Positions 9,176 through 59,703 of a stretch of DNA of 64,000 nt are shown here, piece after piece. Under the pieces are notes generated by a model, which did not search any database, had not been told where the DNA came from, and saw only the letters and a program-made list of their open reading frames with translations. Origin of the DNA: Octopus sinensis (lineage: Eukaryota). Where the stretch lies: positions 138,074,001-138,138,000 of the forward strand of contig NC_042998.1 of NCBI RefSeq assembly GCF_006345805.1, in the 5' to 3' direction. A program made the position numbers and the translations under genes. Within the stretch, counting starts at the first letter, position 1. Each line of letters begins with the position of its first letter.

Positions 9176-9260
9176 ATACAAACACACACTTACATACCCG
9201 CTCATATGTACCTGTATGTATTATGTATTAATAATATAAGAAAAAAATGTTTCTACTTAC

Positions 9261-9682
9261 CTGTACGCGTGACTCAGTTAAACCAATTCTGAGAGCCAAT
9301 TCTTCTCGCATAAAAATGTCTGGGTAGTGAGTTTTAGCGAAACTGCGCTCAAGTTCGTTCAACTGGGCAGGCGTGAAACGTGTTCTGTGTCGTTTTTGTT
9401 TGACAGTTTTGTCCAGATCTTGGCCGTTGTTTCCGCCTCCTCCGTTACCATTACCGGTACCGCCATTAAGTGAAGACTGATGCTGTTCTGAACTGGTTCG
9501 TCCATTATTGATGACTGAAGACTTCAGCTGGTTTTCTTCTTTCTCTTTGAGCGGGGCACCACCAAGGAGTTCATGACCCGGATCGCGGATACCTGGAACA
9601 GTAGAGAGTAATTCACACAGGACGGTTGAGGGAACATCCAGTCTTTTACTGGGGTGCTGGTCGATAGAAATACGGCTCACAT
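9261..9682 (-). CDS. Otp: Orthopedia homeobox gene, internal coding exon (N-terminal region, Gly/Asn-rich linker, homeodomain residues 1-46)
   Basis: Translation contains [47 protein letters not shown], the Otp homeodomain as I know it from other bilaterians (homeobox part 9261-9398). Acceptor tttttattgtAG ends at 9683; donor CAG|GTAAGT at 9261/9260 is the classic PRD-class intron between residues 46 and 47. The exon is 422 nt and starts in phase 1. Confidence 0.97.
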
Positions 9683-24059: not shown

Positions 24060-30060
<6,001 letters not shown>

Positions 30061-50369: not shown

Positions 50370-52285
50370 GTCTCCTAATGTCAACGTCCAAGCTCGTTGT
50401 GCCTCAATGATAACAAGCTGTAATGCCTCAATGATAACAAAGCAAAATACAAACCGAATCTGCCGTCACCCGTATAAATAAGGACCGCGTACCAGACTGG
50501 GTACGAAAAATCAGCTACTGGCTGAAATCTTCCCGAAACACAGGAGCTGGAAGTACCCCACAACCGGAATATTCCAACAGATGGCCATCTACGTTCGTCA
50601 TCAAATAACCAAAAGAAAAAAATGAAAAATGGTCTCGGGGAGATAATAAAGAAGTTCTTAAGGCTTTCTATCATGCCATGTATTTCCCCATAAATAAATT
50701 TACTACTGAACAAACCCACCTAAACTGGAGACAGAATCAGCTAGAAGTAAGACCCTACATAGACAGTAACAAACATGCCAACGACAGAAGAAACATTATG
50801 AAAAATAAATTACTAAGTGAAGCAGAGATTGACCAAATTAAACAGTCAGTAAGGGATAAAGGGAACGAAGTTGTAGCTAAAGAATATACTACAGAGGAAA
50901 TCATTATAGACCAGCCCGAGTCTGGTAAAAATGCAGTAATTATAGAAAGAGTTAATGTAGCTGATAAGCAAAGTGAAATACTCTCTGAACCAACCATAAA
51001 CACCAAGGCAGATGAAAATCAAATAGATGAAGAAAGTCACACTGAAATTGACCCAACTGAACTAGATGATTTAAAAGATCAAATCGTGATTGAATGGTTG
51101 AAAATTAAAGAAACCAGTATGAATGAACGTAACACTCTCCAAAAATTCGGAACTCTAACGAAAATCTGAAAGTAATTGGTAAAATCCGCCTTGCACTTAA
51201 GGATATAATTTCAGCTAATGATGTTGATATTACAGATCTCAGCCACCTGTACTATGCATCCGCAAAAATCTCAACGATTCTATGTGGTGAAAAGATTAGA
51301 AAACAACATCATTCTCACGAAAAGCCTACTTGGGAAGGGCGTATTCAACACCAAATTCAGCTACTTAGGTCTGACATAGAATGTTTAAAGAATCATAAGT
51401 TTGACAAGACTATCAAACCTACGAAAATCCAAAAATTAAAGAAAAATATATGAAAACCATACTTGACATCGATACCACCAGAGAAAGTATCAAGCTAAAG
51501 GAATGTACTAAAGCTGCTTGCATAGCAAGGTATGAAAAGCGCGTTAGAGTCTTCAAGGACAACATGTTCAAAAATAACCCAAAAGATATTTACCGGAATA
51601 TAGGGAAAATATCAGTTACAGTAAAGTCTGTCCCATCGAAAGAAGTGCAGGAATTTTGGAATAAAATTTGGGAAGAAGAAAAAACACACAATTGATAGAA
51701 TATCTACTGACTTAGACTCCATAGAAGAGCAAAAGTGGGAGGGTATCAAGGTAGAGGATGTAGGATCTGCTCTCGAGAAGTCATGCAAATGGAAGTCTTC
51801 AGGAAAGGATAAAATTCCCAACTTCTGGTTGAATGCCTTTACAGAGTCATGAACTGCTAACAAAAGCTTACAGCAACGTTTTGCAACAATCTAGTATGAT
51901 TCCCTGTTAACTAGTTAATGGTGTAACATTCTTACTTCCAAAAAATGAGGAAACAAATGAACCGAAAAATTATAGACCCATAATCTGCTTAACAACAATG
52001 TATAAAATACTAACATCTGTCCTGACTGAATATAACTATTTTTTTAAAATAGAAAGTAGCATATTCCCTAATGAGCAAAAAGGATGTAAACGTGGGTCCT
52101 AAGGTTGTAAAGAACAGCTACTCATCAATAAGATGAACTTAGAAGATTGTCATAAACGACACAAAAACTAGTCAATAGCCTGGGTAGACCATAAAAAAAG
52201 CTACCACATAGCTGGATTAAGAAGTGTCTGGAAATGTATAAAATTGCACCTACTCTGCGAAACTTCTTGTCTGTAAGTATGAGAT
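50370..52285 (+). mobile_element. RLE-type LINE 5' part with RT start (pseudogenised)
   Basis: N-terminus ..DRRNIMKNKLLSEAEIDQIK, and RT motifs WKSSGKDKIPNFW, NYRPIICLTTMYKILT, EQKGCKRGS*GCKEQLLINK and AWVDHKK; many stops. Confidence 0.85.
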
Positions 52286-52289
52286 CATG

Positions 52290-53800
52290 GAGAACAGACA
52301 GATTGATCTAGACAGATTGATTAAAGCCCTTATCATCTATATAGGAAATAAAGTAGGCCTTGAACCAAACCGTAAAAGTGGGAAAGAAAGAAATGAACCT
52401 TGGTGGAAAAGAAGAATAAAACAATCAATGAACGAACTACAAAAACATATCAACATCTTGGAAAGAAAGGAAAAAAGTGAAATCTAGAGGGAGGAGAAAT
52501 ATCAGGAACTAGAACGTAGATGTTGGATAAAGAAAAAGGGGCTAAATGTAGTTCTTGAAGAGTTGAAACAAAGACTGCAGGCTTAAGCGACAAAGATCAA
52601 GAGATATGACCAAAGAATTGAGCAATATAAAATCAAGAGACCAGAAAAGGTGTTTATCAACAGCTGAATGGGAAGGTTAACAGTAGTGAGAGACCGGACG
52701 CTGAAGAAAGTAAAACGTTTTGGAGTAACATCTGGGATAACGGAAGAAAATATAACAAAGATGCGAAATGGTTGAAGGAACTAAGATCAGAAAAATATGA
52801 GGTGAAACAGTAATATTAGAATAACGACTGAGATGGTGACCGAACAGAATATAAAGATCCCAAACTTGAAATTCCCAAGGCTGGATGGGATACAAGGATA
52901 TTGGCTGAACAATTACCCAGCACTACACAGGAGAATAGCTACGTAAATTCATAAAATGATCAACAACGGGGCACAAACCTCAAGGTGGCTGACCGCAGGT
53001 AAAACAATTCTAAAAGGACTCCAGGTAATGCAGTGGATAATTACAGGCCTATTACCTGCTTGCCTCTGATGTGGAAGCTGATGACGGGAATAATATACAA
53101 TTACGTTTATAACTTCCTGGAAATGAATGATAAACTGCCAGTGGAACAGAAAGGATGCAGAAGGAAAAGCCGAGGGACAAAAGACCAACTTCTGATAGAC
53201 AGAAGAGTATTGAACGACTGCATGAAATTACTTACTAATCTGAGCATGGCGTAGATCGATTATAAAAAAAAAAACGTATGACATGGTCCCCCATTCCTGG
53301 ATTTTCGAAAGTCTTGAGCTGGTATAGGTGTCTGATAACATCAACTTTTATTAGGTGCTCAATGAAGAACTGGAATACAGAGTTAACTTCATGTGAGCAA
53401 TTTTGGCAAAGGTTAACATCAAGAGTGGTATATTTCAAGGAGATAGCCTATCCCCATTGTGTTTGTGATTTGTATGATACTCCTCACACAGATACTACGG
53501 AAAGGGTTATCCGGGTACACCTTAAAAAGTAGAGGAAGGTTAAATCATGTTGTATGTGGATGACTTCAAGATCTTTGGGAAGACCGAACGTGAAATAAAT
53601 GGCCTAGTTTCAACAGTGCAGTTATTCAGTAAGGATATGGGAATGGAATTTGGGATTTGAACGTGTGATATGCTTGTAATACAAAAAAGCAAAATAATGT
53701 CGTCTGGTAGTGTAGAACTACCCAACGGCGACAAAATCAAGGATATTGAGACTGATGGATATCAGTATCTGGGTATTTTGGAATATGACAAAATCGAAGT
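52290..53800 (+). mobile_element. Second RLE-type LINE fragment with RT domain
   Basis: [74 protein letters not shown] and YQYLGILE. It restarts upstream of RT, so it is a different copy from 50370-52285. Confidence 0.88.
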
Positions 53801-55456: not shown

Positions 55457-55922
55457 CATGCATGCATATAGAAACGCATGCATGCTACCGATAAAACCTA
55501 CCACAGCTGCAGGACGATTTTCATCGGCTCCTGATATATATTCATATTTATGTTTTTAAACACCGTACGTCCATAAGCGATATTAACACAGGCTGAATAC
55601 CATAGTTAATTTGCCTTTTCGTGGTGCATCTACATGAAGTATGACACATACCTGGCTATTTTAATCTAATACTTGTTTTGTTGCGCATCGGATATATATA
55701 TATATATATATATAATATATATATATATATATGTATGTATGTGTGTGTGTGTGTGTGTGTATGTGTGTATTTAGCACTGTTTTATATATATATATGTATA
55801 TATATAAATATACATACATACACACTCACACACACACACATACACACACACATACATACATACATACATACATACATACATACATACATACATACATACA
55901 TGCATACATATATATATATATA

Positions 55923-56150
55923 TGTTTGTAGCCACTTCAACATGGCTGTCCGTTCAAACGGACTTTACTGCGAGTTTTTAACCCCAAGAAGACTTCGCCT
56001 CTAGCTAGTTAACGATGCACAGCTGCTTCCGATATATTGCGAACTGGGGAGCGTACCCCTACCACCTTCTGGCAACGGGACCAACAGACCAGCTTGGTTT
56101 AGAGGTGTTTCTACCTCTCTTCAGTGCTGGACACCACGTCTGCTAGAGAT
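55923..56150 (-). repeat. Hammerhead repeat X, copy A (3' part; 5' part continues at 58635-58714)
   Basis: Similar to 58737-58949 (direct) and 58951-59296 (inverted); end motif tgtttgtagccact. Confidence 0.88.
56081..56130 (-). ncRNA. Type I hammerhead ribozyme with one core substitution (G12 to U)
   Basis: Minus strand reads CCAGCA CUGAAGA GAGGU agaaac ACCUC UAAAC CAAGCUG GUC UGUUGG. Helix I has 6 bp and helix II 5 perfect bp; helix III has a near-palindromic loop; the triplet is GUC. The other two copies retain GAAAC. Confidence 0.8.
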
Positions 56151-58634
56151 GTATTCTTTATTGTGATAATATTTATCAGACATAGAGAGGACAATACAGG
56201 ACATCACAAACAAAAAGTGTTCAAGGGTTCATAAATGAGTTTTAAAAATACGATGATGTATTTAAATCTAAATAAAAAATTTTAAACCTTGGCCGTGAAG
56301 TCCACCGGCTATACCGTACTACTTTTCTATGGTTGAGATTAAGCAGGGTCATTCACCTCCAACTTTCTGTCCATATCCTTCTATCTTTTCCCATATACAC
56401 TTCGCGACAGGTGTCTTTCTCCAGCCCTATCTTGCTTTTCAGATGATATCTGAAGTAGTATAGCAAGCCAGGGCTGGAGATGAATCTTCCCGTCATTCTA
56501 GATTTCCATATACATTCTTTCAGTACTGCAACTGTGCACAAGAAACACGCCTTACCTTCCTTTGTCAACAAAAGCGTGGACAACTAAACGTATTCCTATC
56601 TGTATCCCTAACGAAATTCCTATCTATATAGAATCTGAGTGAACCGTCGTTATTAGTCCATGTTTACTGTGGAACCAGCGGTTCATCCAGTCTATAACGG
56701 TCTACTAGATTACAGAATTCTTTTGAGGCCCGGGCTTCTCTTGCTATCGGTTGAGCCAGCACTAACCGCCCGTGCATCGAGAATAGAGTTAAAGTTTCCT
56801 CGTACAACTAGAGTTCTTGACGTCACTAAGAAGTTCCCGGTAACAGCCAGCCTGTCTACTTTGTTTTGGTGCATAGACAGCTACCAACCTGAAGGACTAT
56901 TTACTTACATGTGTTACATTCAAAACGACCAGCCTACCTTCTGTGTCCAGAAAGACTGCACTTGCCTGCACGTCCAGGTTTTCCTTCAATAAGACCACAC
57001 GACCTCACTCCCCCACCATTTCTCGTAGCCATTTAGAAGGGACGAGAACGCTTGTAGCCCACACAGCTTAGACTACGATACAATACATACATCTATATCT
57101 AGTGACCTAAGTTTGTTTCCAGTTCAACCCTAGGCTACACGCATTTATACACCCTAACTTAATTTCCATAATAAAATGGTATTTACATTTTTAGTTTGAG
57201 GGGCTGCACGAATTCAGCTTCACCCGATCCTTTTTCTTCTGTGGTGTAACCCCTGGACTGACCCTAAAACTTTGGCCGCCCATCTCTTTGCTAACATCAT
57301 TGATGTCGTCTGGGCACCTTATTATTGTCATTAAAAGAAATAATTTTGTTTTGCGTCTTGAGGTGGGAATGGGAAATGGGTTTTAACAAGGGGTGGTCTG
57401 GGGTTGGGTTTCGTGTGTGTCTGCATTTGCTTTGGATATTTTCTTTGTATGGGATGAGGAATCTTTCTTTTTGGGGGATTTAACTGTGGTAAACTTCATT
57501 TCGTCACCTTCTGTGGTTTGTACTGTTGCCTCTTGTTTCCTTGGGTTCTTGTATAACTTTTGATTGTTTTGCTGGTTGCTTTTTTTCTCTTCCGCGTTTT
57601 GTGGGTTTCGTTCTTCTTTGCTTTACAGTCTGAGTTAACATTGACCCTTCTCGCCGCATTTAAAGCAACGCGGCCTACGTCCTTCTACTCCGATCCTTAC
57701 GCTTAGCCCCTCGCCTATATAAACTTCAGGTTTGGCCTGTACGACCATCTCGAGGGACTGACCTTTCCAGTTCTCTATTTCCTTTTTTGTTTTTCATTTT
57801 CAGAATGCTCATTTCCTCTTCCAGGTCATTAGTAATGGCTGCCGTTATCCATATAACGTCGAAACCTGCCAGAATTTCTTCCACTTTAATTTTAGCGGTC
57901 CGTCTGCCCATATACGTCGGCAGTAATATCACCTCTTCATTTTTTAAGGTCATTGAAGATAAATCCTTTGCCGTTTTTTCATCGGCGAATTGAGCCTTCT
58001 TTCACGGCCGACGTAAATTATTCTGTTCCAGATTGGCGACAGGCATTTTTCTATCGCCTCACTTTTACATGTAATAATTCTCTTTTCTTTCATACTGTAC
58101 GTTTTGTGTACTATAGTTTTTGCCGCAATATTCTGTAAAACTTCTTGACAAGGGAGTAGTTTTATATCACTTCCTTTTTTTTTTTTGACAAGGTTCCTAT
58201 ATTTAAAAAGTTTTGCCATTGTGACTTCCATTGTTATCATGTTGCTGCCAACGGTGGCCGAAAAACTTCGTTTTTCCTTTTGTACTTGCGTTAAATTTTC
58301 ATTATTTTTAGCCTTTTCCAAGTCTGGGAAACCTTCGTTCGAAAACAAATTGTAATCCATGACGTGAAAATTTTTCATAGTAAACAAATTCCTTCAAAAA
58401 GGAATGAAATTAGCCAAAAATAATTTTTGACAAAAACTAATTTTTATCCTGCAAAGGGTAAAAATCGCAGTTCTAATCACAGTTGTCGCTTTTACAAAAA
58501 TATTTCAAAATTTAAGAATTTTCTGCCCCCAAGGGCGAAAATAACAATTAACAAATAAATCACAGTTCAATTCCAACAATTGCAAAAATAACAATGAAGC
58601 ATTAACTCACAACAACCAAAAAAGCCTGACACGT
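56151..58634 (-). mobile_element. L1/Tx1-clade LINE, both ends present, RT deleted, 13-bp TSD
   Basis: ORF1 remnants (58387-57726) with CFKCGEKG(H)VNSDC knuckle at 57625-57667, broken by a 1-nt insertion. APE motifs FRLVAVYAP, LVVRGNFNSILD and WTNNDGSLRFYIDR at ~56620-56895 join near 56575 to an L1/Tx1-like C-terminus (AVLKECIWKSR..YFRYHLKSKI). AATAAA lies just inside the 3' end. TSD gtctg(c/g)tagagat at 56138-56150 and 58635-58647. Confidence 0.85.
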
Positions 58635-58736
58635 GTCTGGTAGAGATAGCAGTAGCTCGCTGATTTTTCAACACGCAAAAATGTTAGTTTTAAAATCTCT
58701 TTAAGAGATCAACACAGTAGTTGTACTAACAAGTAC

Positions 58737-58949
58737 TGTTTGTAGCCACTTCAACATGGCTGTCCGTTCGAACGGAATTTAGTGCGATTTTTTAACCCCG
58801 AGAGGATAAGAGGATATCTCCCCTAGCTGGTTAACGATGCACAGCTGCATCCAATATATTGCGAGAAGGGGAGTGAACCTTTACGACCTTCTAGCGACAG
58901 GACCAGCTTGGTTTCTGGCTATTTCTACCTCTCTTCAATACTGGACACC
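58737..58949 (-). repeat. Hammerhead repeat X, copy B (partial; C3 to U in core)
   Basis: Minus strand reads ccagua UUGAAGA gagguagaaauagcca GAAAC caagcug GUC at 58895-58944. Confidence 0.82.
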
Positions 58950-58950
58950 T

Positions 58951-59296
58951 TGTTGATCTCTTAGAGAAATTTTAGAACTAGCATTTTTGCTTGTTGCAAA
59001 ATCAGCGATTATGTGTCGCTTGAAATTATATATATTGCGAGCAGGAGCGAGCTACTGCTGTCTCTAGCAGACGAGGTGTTCAGTACTGAAGAGAGAGAGA
59101 CAGAAATAGCCTGAAACCAGGCTGGCCAGCTGGTTTTGTTGCTAGAAGGCGGTGGGGGTTCGCGCCCCTGATCGTAATATATCTGATGTAGCTGTGTGAG
59201 CATCGTTAACCAGCTAGAGGAGATGTCCTCTTGGGGGTTAAAAAATTGCAGTAAAATCCATTCGAATGGACAGTCATGTTATAGTGGCTACAAACA
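58951..59296 (+). repeat. Hammerhead repeat X, copy C (inverted, uninterrupted)
   Basis: Contains the uninterrupted junction gctactgctgtctctagcagacgaggtg, CTGAAGA at 59086-59092 and GAAAC at 59113-59117; the cleavage triplet is altered to GCC. Confidence 0.85.
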
Positions 59297-59308
59297 ACTT
59301 ATATATAT

Positions 59309-59356
<48 letters not shown>

Positions 59357-59361
<5 letters not shown>

Positions 59362-59703
59362 GGGGGTAAAGACCCCCTTCGGTCAGGCACTGACCATGGG
59401 TTTGCACCTAGAGAGATACCCTCTGAGGCACAAGTCTGGGCAAGGTTGTTTTATGGAAGACCAGCAGTCGCCCATGCATACCGGCCTCCCCTCTCCACGT
59501 CACCGATGTTGTCCAAGGGAAAGGCAAGGGCCGATACAGCTTGGGACCTGTGACGTCGCAACTCATTTCTACAGCTGAGTGAACTGGAGCAACGTGAAAT
59601 AAAGTGCCTTGCTCAAGAACACAACACGCAGCCCCGTCTGGGATTCGAGCTCACAACCTCACGATCGTAAGCTCGACGCTCTAACCACTGAGCCATGCGC
59701 CTT
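59357..59703 (-). mobile_element. SINE family C (tRNA-derived head)
   Basis: Head GGCGCATGGCTCAGTGGTTAGAGCG..GAGCTCGAATCCC followed by a cttgagcaaggcactttatttcacgttgctccag body; degenerate copies at ~27040-27245 and ~35770-36070. Confidence 0.82.

Follow-up and report, generated by a model that had tools for sequence, protein, structure and literature searches.

We analyzed a 64,000-nucleotide (nt) stretch of the Octopus sinensis genome (assembly GCF_006345805.1, contig NC_042998.1, positions 138,074,001 to 138,138,000 of the forward strand; hereafter, the window, to which the coordinates below refer unless another locus is named), in particular, a cluster at 55923-59296 in which a long interspersed nuclear element (LINE) lies within a repeat that contains a hammerhead-like ribozyme fold. 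The repeat, denoted X here, is present in the cluster in three copies with pairwise identity of 76-79%, in line with the three ~350-bp copies recognized in a first-pass annotation of the same DNA; outside the cluster, nothing in the window resembles either X or the insert. The cluster is flanked by a (TA)n/(ACAT)n microsatellite on the left (55905-55922) and by a (TA)n tract on the right (59300-59358). Copy A, on the minus strand, consists of two separate parts: a 5' part (58648-58736), the first 24 nt of which resemble the inner end of the antisense arm, and the 3' two-thirds (55923-56150), which include the 3' copy of a target-site duplication, the hammerhead, and the 3' part ending with ...GGCTACAAACA. 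Copy B (58737-58950, minus strand) comprises the hammerhead and the 3' part only, with the 5' third missing, and forms the inverted arm of copy C. Copy C (58951-59296, plus strand) is uninterrupted and includes an empty site (59060-59072) and a degenerate hammerhead (59080-59133). A 42-nt segment of copy C (59009-59050), with AGCGA direct repeats at both edges, is missing from copy A; because the flanks of three related LINEs described below (L003, L004, and L011) align to this segment, it was deleted from copy A rather than inserted in copy C.

Copy A is interrupted by a 2,484-bp insert (56151-58634, minus strand) bracketed by GTCTGCTAGAGAT (56138-56150) and GTCTGGTAGAGAT (58635-58647), which are identical in 12 of the 13 positions; in the minus-strand orientation, these are the 3' copy, ATCTCTAGCAGAC, and the 5' copy, ATCTCTACCAGAC, of the target-site duplication. 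Copy C contains a single, unbroken copy of the 13-mer site at 59060-59072, and X is colinear on either side of it. The first-pass annotation had described copy A as split by a 2.48-kb element with a 13-bp duplication and copy C as the uninterrupted junction, and the nested insertion is confirmed in exactly this form. No long terminal repeat (LTR) or terminal inverted repeat was found inside the insert. Two observations suggest that the target duplication may encompass 24-25 nt instead of 13 nt: ACGTGTCAGGC, the 11-nt start of the insert, is similar to GTGGTGTCCAGC, the part of X that follows the 13-mer on its 3' side, and the initial TTTTT of related LINEs comes immediately after ...CAGGC or ...CAGAC. 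Under this alternative, the 3' copy of the duplication would extend to 56126, and the 5' end of the LINE would be at 58623; when 58647-58624 is aligned with 56150-56126, 20 of the 26 columns are identical, on par with the divergence among the X copies.

The insert is a heavily decayed LINE that retains both ends, contains many stop codons and frameshifts, has no poly(A) tail, and carries an AATAAA motif (56157-56162) at a distance of 6 nt from the 3' terminus. Its minus strand comprises a 256-nt leader, the first open reading frame (ORF1), an endonuclease, ~70 further codons, and a 205-nt tail. The ORF1 remnant (57638-58378) includes an RNA recognition motif-like region and a CCHC knuckle (RCFKCGEKGQC, at about 57640-57680). 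The apurinic/apyrimidinic-type endonuclease (APE) remnant (56571-57169) is spread over three frames and is followed by the remnant of the ORF2 C-terminus (56356-56571) and by the 3' untranslated region (UTR; 56151-56355). When an intact 142-amino acid (aa) stretch of ORF1 was compared to a library of 1.8 billion proteins, 34 relatives were detected at E<=1e-3 (best E-value, 2.6e-22); two of the matches are named as Octopus vulgaris and O. sinensis proteins, and ORF1 homologs are found in O. vulgaris, O. sinensis, and O. bimaculoides. The contigs encoding the ORF1 matches constitute the set of related loci used throughout this work; among these, L003 and L011 are Logan transcript contigs, and L004 comes from the O. 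bimaculoides genome. The 3' UTR of the window copy resembles those of L001, an O. vulgaris locus, and L004 (...CCTGTATTGT...AATAAA...).

The first-pass annotation had assigned this element to the L1/Tx1 type, and at the level of the L1 superfamily, sequence comparison supports that assignment. The stitched APE of the window copy is similar to ORF2 of L004 (E=1.6e-67) and ORF2 of L001 (E=2.4e-35), and the intact L001 ORF2, in turn, matches human L1 ORF2p across the endonuclease and the reverse transcriptase (E=2e-71), human L1 ORF2p in the PDB being the sole clade anchor. In a direct comparison of the stitched APE with the human L1 endonuclease (human L1 ORF2p, checked against PDB entries and trimmed to the endonuclease plus ~65 following residues), phmmer yielded an E-value of 2.8e-6 (Z=1), and the Smith-Waterman score was 85 versus 33.6+-4.9 for shuffled sequences, that is, 10 standard deviations above. 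Neither the three raw frames nor the stitched ORF1 or the stitched APE produced a meaningful match in Pfam; a PDB sequence search with the stitched APE and word-indexed protein searches with the stitched LINE proteins returned nothing; and exact-protein look-ups of three window ORFs found no record. A tblastn search of the window with human L1 ORF2p matched only another LINE, at about 51-53 kb. This second, unrelated LINE (~50700-53100, plus strand) contains a 163-aa ORF (50678-51169) and shows reverse transcriptase-like matches to L1 ORF2p and to the L001 ORF2 around 51.4-53.1 kb, including the motif NYRPI.

The window copy of the X-nested LINE lacks any reverse transcriptase, a point that the first-pass annotation had missed. 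Residues 72-220 of the L001 ORF2 map to 56998-56571 and residues 1052-1120 to 56571-56356, so that residues 220 and 1052 become adjacent near 56571, and ~830 codons, including the entire reverse transcriptase, have been deleted. Given that the reverse transcriptase is present in the relatives L001 and L004, the window copy is a deletion derivative rather than an element of a different kind. With the reverse transcriptase deleted, the reading frames broken, and the neighboring hammerhead carrying a substitution in the core (see below), this copy is, as far as can be judged from its sequence, dead.

The hammerhead-like fold of copy A (56081-56130, minus strand) begins exactly 20 nt past the 3' end of the LINE, on the same strand, as the first-pass annotation had indicated. 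The sequence from 56130 to 56081 reads CCAGCA-CUGAAGA-GAGGU(AGAAAC)ACCUC-UAAA-ACCA(AGC)UGGU-C-UGUUGG, with helices I, II, and III of 6, 5, and 4 bp, respectively, an open helix I, and the cleavage triplet GUC. Stem I is formed by 56125-56130 and 56081-56086, the CUGAAGA box occupies 56118-56124, the stem II hairpin, 56102-56117, and stem III, 56088-56098; C17 is at 56087, and cleavage is predicted between 56087 and 56086. Apart from the replacement of G12 with U (UAAA for GAAA), this is a textbook type I hammerhead. A scan of both strands of the window with a descriptor of the canonical motif, in which one mismatch was permitted in G12-A14, recovered this fold as the only match, with 0.005 matches per 64 kb expected by chance (400 first-order Markov simulations of the window); a looser descriptor produced no further match in the window or in ~130 kb of the related loci. 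The hammerhead reported previously is real as a motif, but G12 is mutated, and the fold escapes Rfam, which detected no hammerhead in the window (at the gathering score), in the X region (at E<=10), or in the related loci.

The other copies of X are damaged in different ways. The CUGANGA core box is CUGAAGA in copies A and C and UUGAAGA in copy B (C3 to U); the GAAA box is present in copies B and C, the helices of which are damaged, and is UAAA in copy A, the only copy with all three helices. In copy B (degenerate hammerhead at 58901-58944), an 8-nt deletion has removed the 3' strand of stem I, and in copy C, stem II is broken by a 4-nt (AGAG) insertion. Nevertheless, the majority consensus of the three copies retains CUGAAGA, GAAA, stem III, and GUC. 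Across the copies, helices I, II, and III are paired in 93%, 56%, and 88% of the cells, respectively. In copies A and C, pairing is retained in 93-100% of the cells of stem I and of an 18-bp helix I extension, compared to 33-50% in slid controls; the extension itself is fully paired in both copies and includes one compensatory change, A-U to G-C. In the isolated 50-mer of copy A, a competing hairpin is favored (-15.7 vs -12.0 kcal/mol under the nearest-neighbor model), which weighs against an active ribozyme. The minimum-energy fold of full-length X RNA includes the three-way junction, located at the tip of a long, conserved helix; the self-pairing of the RNA corresponds to fold z-scores of -2.5 for copy A and -6.3 for copy C.

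Could the hammerhead of copy A be fortuitous, with X being no more than a structured repeat of a common kind (a foldback element, a short interspersed nuclear element (SINE), or a repeat resembling a miniature inverted-repeat transposable element (MITE)) without any ribozyme history? We consider this unlikely. Such an origin would agree with the lack of an Rfam match, with the core or helix defect in every copy and the non-conserved stem II, and with the long terminal inverted repeats and TA-rich flanks of the B+C unit; furthermore, extrapolation from the simulations suggests that on the order of a hundred one-mismatch matches to the descriptor are expected by chance in a genome of a few Gb. 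In the DNA that was actually scanned, about 195 kb, the motif is the sole match, it caps a long, conserved helix, and both core boxes are restored in the consensus of the three copies; in addition, the size of X, its partial tandem and inverted architecture, and the (TA)n context are those of known hammerhead-bearing elements (PMC8557442, PMC4209133, PMC7229834). Judging from the fold models, X very probably descends from a hammerhead-bearing element, and judging from the sequences, it is likely that none of the three copies is active as a ribozyme now.

X itself appears to be a short, non-coding retroposon of octopus genomes, with a sense unit of about 320 nt and a fuller form of about 560 nt that includes a 215-nt inverted arm. 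The repeat has a fixed 3' end, one of the copies is truncated at the 5' end, the head-to-tail junction is found again in L011, and in L004 too, the inverted arm is colinear with the 5' part of X. By analogy, X can be described as a retrozyme-like element or an element in the style of Penelope-like elements (PLEs), the RNA of which is predicted to form a long, imperfectly paired helix that ends in a type I hammerhead. Animal non-LTR retrozymes are 170-400 nt long, contain type I hammerheads, and are expected to be mobilized by LINEs or PLEs (PMC7229834). X resembles these retrozymes (PMC7229834; 10.64898/2026.07.22.740005) in being non-coding, about 320 nt long, and low in GC, in having a type I hammerhead-like fold and a highly self-paired RNA, and in forming head-to-tail X-X junctions, in the window and in L011. 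Unlike these retrozymes, X has a fixed 3' terminus (...CTACAAACA), a 5'-truncated copy, and a long inverted arm, forms only two tandem units but no long array, and carries a degenerate hammerhead in every copy.

For PLEs, a characteristic insertion architecture, a bias toward (TA)n, and hammerheads in the pseudo-LTRs have been described (PMC8557442, PMC4209133). X shares with such insertions the partial tandem with an adjoining inverted, 5'-truncated copy in a (TA)n tract, the hammerheads located on opposite strands a few hundred bp apart, and, possibly, an unpaired nucleotide between A9 and stem II in the version of the motif found in copies B and C. The differences are the stem III of 4 bp, as opposed to the minimal 1-2 bp, and the recurrence in L004 of the colinearity between antisense copy B and the 5' part of copy C, an indication that the inverted arm is passed on with the element and does not arise de novo every time it inserts. 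X might thus work like retrozymes or PLE insertions, but we refrain from classifying it as a proven member of either group because no intact ribozyme and no Penelope genes were noticed; specifically, no ORF for a PLE reverse transcriptase or a GIY-YIG endonuclease was noticed in or beside X, although no search aimed at either was made. Two other assignments were considered and rejected: X as the SINE partner of the LINE, because the 3' ends are dissimilar, and X as a Tc1/mariner-type MITE, as the long inverted arms and the TA-rich flanks might suggest, because the 5' truncation of copy A and the conserved tandem junction point to retroposition. Exact-pattern scans of metagenomes for the conserved X blocks gave 0 matches, and a literature search on octopus and hammerhead found nothing relevant. 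Next to the (TA)n tract on the right of X, with its tail touching the tract, there is a tRNA-derived SINE (59360-59700, minus strand) in which ARAGORN called no tRNA; sequences 75-90% identical to it are repeated across the window and in two related loci, L001 and L002.

The related loci define the boundaries of the LINE independently of the window. L001 (O. vulgaris OX597840.1, 4445-19184) contains three head-to-tail copies of an intact, 5.27-kb L1-like LINE without any spacer, with identity of 99-100% and a period of about 5,279 bp, the last copy being cut off at the 3' end; its ORF1 is annotated as 'EPM2A-interacting 1-like', and from its sequence, the element looks active or very recently active. 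In L004 (CM046605.1), two LINEs are also arranged head to tail, but their mutual identity is only about 75%, so these are separate insertions that ended at the same spot. The LINEs of L003, L004, and L011 show 64-71% DNA identity to the window copy. The LINE ends set by the duplication in the window are the same as those at the head-to-tail junctions in L004 (...ATAATAAAAA joined to TTTTTCAAAC) and in L001, with a slack of a few nt at the 3' end, which argues that the LINE is a discrete unit of which X is not a part. An identical 19-mer, TTTTTCAAACAGCTGGTCG, precedes each LINE in L004 (9766-9784 and 15392-15410) and is similar to AAACCAAGCTGGTC, the 3' half of the hammerhead in X; it could represent a target duplication produced when a second insertion hit the same spot or, alternatively, a conserved 5' terminus of the LINE.

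These junctions bear directly on the possibility that X represents the termini of the LINE itself, so that the mobile unit would be X5'-LINE-X3', and copy C, an internal-deletion derivative produced by recombination or template switching between the 13-nt repeats. The order of the parts in the window, namely, the hammerhead and 3' part of copy B, the 5' part of copy A, the LINE, and the hammerhead and 3' part of copy A, does resemble a partial tandem with pseudo-LTRs, and X sequence is found beside several related LINEs. Yet, there is no X in the head-to-tail junctions of L004 and L001, which match the boundaries set by the duplication, the L001 array begins in sequence unrelated to X, and an insertion is a more parsimonious explanation than the exact removal of a 2.5-5 kb body. 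We therefore regard this scenario as highly improbable, the least probable of the explanations weighed here.

What distinguishes the window from an isolated nested insertion is the sequence found upstream of related LINEs. In three related LINEs, namely, the first LINE of L004 and those of L003 and L011, X-like sequence lies directly upstream of the LINE 5' end and in the same orientation. The 420 bp immediately before the first LINE of L004 are colinear with 58636-59072 of the window, where the 5' part of copy A (antisense), copy B (antisense), and the 5' part of copy C (sense) follow one another. The alignment of this segment with L004 9338-9753 has a score of 114, compared to 42.8+-7.9 for shuffled sequences (z = 9.1). 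When the comparison was extended to every 500-nt window of three 20-kb octopus loci (L001, L002, and L004) on both strands, the flank of L004 ranked first, far above the next best score of 69 and the median of 36-38. The pieces of this flank that are significant separately are the B-like arm (z 3.9) and the 5' part of X (z 6.1). The L003 contig starts with 50 nt of the same X-like leader (z 3.8-5.5). In L011, positions 1-215 align with the minus strand of the window at 58830..58624 with a score of 81 (z 11.3), and the order, that is, the X 3' end (...GGGGTTAAAAA...GACAAACA), the 5' part of X, and the LINE, is the same as at the tandem B-A junction in the window. The 5' junction has the form ...CAG(G/A)C(A) followed by TTTTT in the window, L011, and the first LINE of L004, and in X, ...CAGYA is the 5' strand of hammerhead stem I; the junction in L003, ...GCGAACA followed by TTCTTTG, is only loosely comparable. 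In L003 and L011, the transcripts run from the X sequence into the LINE.

The first-pass annotation had suggested that this LINE family could target a ribozyme-bearing repeat and that the flanks of other copies would be informative. Applied to the relatives, the flank comparison shows an X-like 5' flank in the first LINE of L004, in L003, and in L011 but none in the more distant L001, L002, or L006. The targeting idea itself is only partly borne out, in that four 5' junctions adjoin X-like sequence, but a 3' junction within X is seen in the window alone. We did consider whether L004 might be the ortholog of the window locus and rejected this because the two flanks share nothing beyond the LINE matches and the weak upstream similarity to X. 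The alignment of the upstream flanks of L001 and L002 gave no information. As for L003 (Logan contig from SRR11869391, positions 1-2036), it is a chimeric transcript in which a complete His_Phos_1 ORF, which we take to be PGAM5-like, lies downstream of the X-like leader and ~800 nt from the 5' region of the LINE; this composition suggests a LINE/X fragment exonized in a host mRNA.

An alternative reading of the upstream matches would be that there is nothing to explain, that is, that the window contains a single chance nested insertion without any specificity, and the likeness of the other flanks to X is an artifact of AT-rich, low-complexity sequence. Consistent with such skepticism, neither BLAST nor nhmmer found a significant match to X in the related loci, z-scores against shuffled sequences can overstate significance in compositionally biased sequence, and one control comparison (the 5' part of X in copy A, X5A, vs L004 9166-9365) reached z 3.7. 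However, the composite alignment score of 114 compares with a background median of 38 and maxima of 69 elsewhere in L004 and 65 in L001 and L002; L011, at z 11.3, contains the recognizable X blocks GGGGTTAAAAA and ...GACAAACA followed by the 5' part of X; and all three flank matches directly adjoin the 5' end of a LINE on the upstream side, always in the same orientation. Coincidence thus appears improbable, and the association between the LINE and X is probably not accidental.

The main competing explanation of the association is that the 5' part of X travels with the LINE. In this scenario, a master LINE resides in X and is transcribed from it, and the daughter copies carry the X leader to arbitrary locations, as in 5' transduction or in the acquisition of a 5' UTR or promoter; the window would then represent either the master-type arrangement or one chance insertion into X. 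In favor of this possibility, L003, L004, and L011 are readable on the 5' flank only, the X-like flanks and the LINE bodies have diverged to a similar extent (about 60-70%), and the L003 and L011 transcripts pass from X sequence into the LINE. It explains the 5' flanks without invoking any target preference, but not the target duplication in the window, which brackets the LINE alone, with X colinear on both sides and an empty site in copy C, nor the tandem junctions of L004 and L001, which lack an X leader. Moreover, farther upstream, the loci differ, with the antisense arm in L004 as opposed to the tandem X 3' end in the window and L011, which fits different X copies having been hit. On balance, we deem leader co-mobilization possible but doubtful, and somewhat more credible than the other alternatives.

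The reading that we favor, with target preference inferred as the cause of the association, is that the lineage of the window LINE appears to prefer the foot of the hammerhead in X as its integration site. Several observations weigh against it. Three more distant relatives, L001, L002, and L006, have no X flank, and the sequence in which the L001 array begins bears no relation to X. Identity in the X-like flanks is low, about 60-70%, and these flanks are AT-rich; the searches of the related loci with BLAST and nhmmer yielded nothing significant, and the significance of the flanks derives from Smith-Waterman scores against mononucleotide shuffles and one empirical genomic background. The window is the only locus with both junctions: the L004 array is cut off on its 3' side by an N gap behind the second LINE (CM046605.1, near 65.26 Mb), and the L003 and L011 contigs stop inside the LINE. 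Furthermore, L011 could be the ortholog of the window locus in another species and, hence, not an independent case. The exact position of the junction is ambiguous by 10-45 nt, and if the 19-mer of L004 derives from X, the insertion in that locus may have occurred right after GUC, not upstream of the core; were this 19-mer a target sequence, the shared insertion site could be a 60-nt neighborhood rather than one nucleotide. With respect to the ribozyme, the antisense arm of L004 has no recognizable hammerhead core, none of the X copies has an intact hammerhead, stem II is paired in just over half of the cells, and Rfam is silent on all the sequences concerned. Taking all this together, we consider it an even call whether the preference of the LINE for X is real.

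The following sequence of events can be envisaged. An L1-superfamily LINE integrated into the long helix I of copy A, presumably by target-primed reverse transcription with the bottom-strand nick at 5'-GAGAT^AGC, unlike the L1-type TTTT/AA, and left a duplication of 13 nt (or perhaps 24-25 nt) that reaches as far as the 5' border of the hammerhead core. If the preference is real, X would serve as an upstream leader co-transcribed with the LINE, whereas the ribozyme of the downstream part of X, if active, would trim the read-through LINE RNA about 64 nt past the end of the LINE. Such an RNA would carry AUCUCUAGCAGAC... after the last base of the LINE, that is, a tail complementary to the nicked target, and the pairing of the two could place the primer exactly at the LINE end. 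That read-through into the ribozyme is what makes the 3' end of the LINE RNA, as the first-pass annotation had also proposed, is pure inference. These putative steps of tail pairing and ribozyme processing have parallels in the R1 and R2 elements and in hepatitis delta virus (HDV)-like ribozymes. As in R2 and the LINEs that are processed by HDV-like ribozymes, the proposed logic would involve co-transcription with a multicopy target, a self-cleaving ribozyme that sets the RNA end, and target-derived RNA tails that aid precise integration; unlike in those systems, the ribozyme here would be a hammerhead contributed by the target instead of the LINE and is predicted to act at the 3' end rather than the 5' end. 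A link between ribozymes and retroelements has been noted previously (PMC4209133). Taken in full, the model of an octopus L1/Tx1-type lineage that is specialized on hammerhead-bearing, retrozyme-like repeats, inserts at the ribozyme's foot, shares a transcript with the repeat, and has its RNA excised with target-derived ends by the host hammerheads strikes us as unlikely.

Precedents for target preference exist among the closest comparators. The Tx1 clade is one of the three groups that are rich in target-specific LINEs, including Tx1L, which inserts in the PTR-1 repeats of the Tx1D DNA transposon, Keno, which inserts in U2 snRNA genes, and Mino, Kibi, and Koshi, which insert in microsatellites (PMC4640811, PMC3747384). 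Similar to these elements, the window element is an L1-superfamily LINE with ORF1 and APE that is located inside another repeat, related copies adjoin the same repeat, independent copies are stacked head to tail at a site, and the nick site in the window is not TTTT/AA and is not accompanied by a poly(A) tail. The difference is that a hammerhead-bearing retroposon is not among the targets described in these two studies and that the candidate specificity here rests on four 5' junctions and one 3' junction.

Far from the X cluster, the window includes an ORF (9228-9680, minus strand) that ends in a paired-like homeobox exon, presumably, of the Orthopedia (Otp) type, so that the window probably lies next to the octopod Otp gene. 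An assembly gap, a run of 100 N, is located at 26232-26331.

Taken alone, the locus consists of a dead LINE within a repeat that is dead as well; of interest is the recurrence of the association, a lead that rests on four junctions. Should this association result from leader co-mobilization or chance, the locus would amount to an ordinary case of one dead repeat nested in another. Established targets of site-specific LINEs are rRNA, snRNA, and spliced-leader genes, telomeres, microsatellites, and one DNA transposon. If the target preference is true, a LINE lineage that targets a ribozyme-bearing retroposon would extend this list by a new target class and would connect L1-type LINEs directly with hammerhead ribozymes for the first time; if the full model, with RNA excision by the host hammerheads, holds too, the lineage would constitute a hammerhead counterpart of the arrangement in which R2 is combined with HDV-like ribozymes. 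It would also bear on the mobilization of animal retrozymes, for which the published view is 'LINEs or PLEs' (PMC7229834) and a recent preprint favors PLEs (Li et al. 2026; 10.64898/2026.07.22.740005): under the full model, the LINE lineage identified here would be a candidate for the long-sought autonomous partner that mobilizes these elements.

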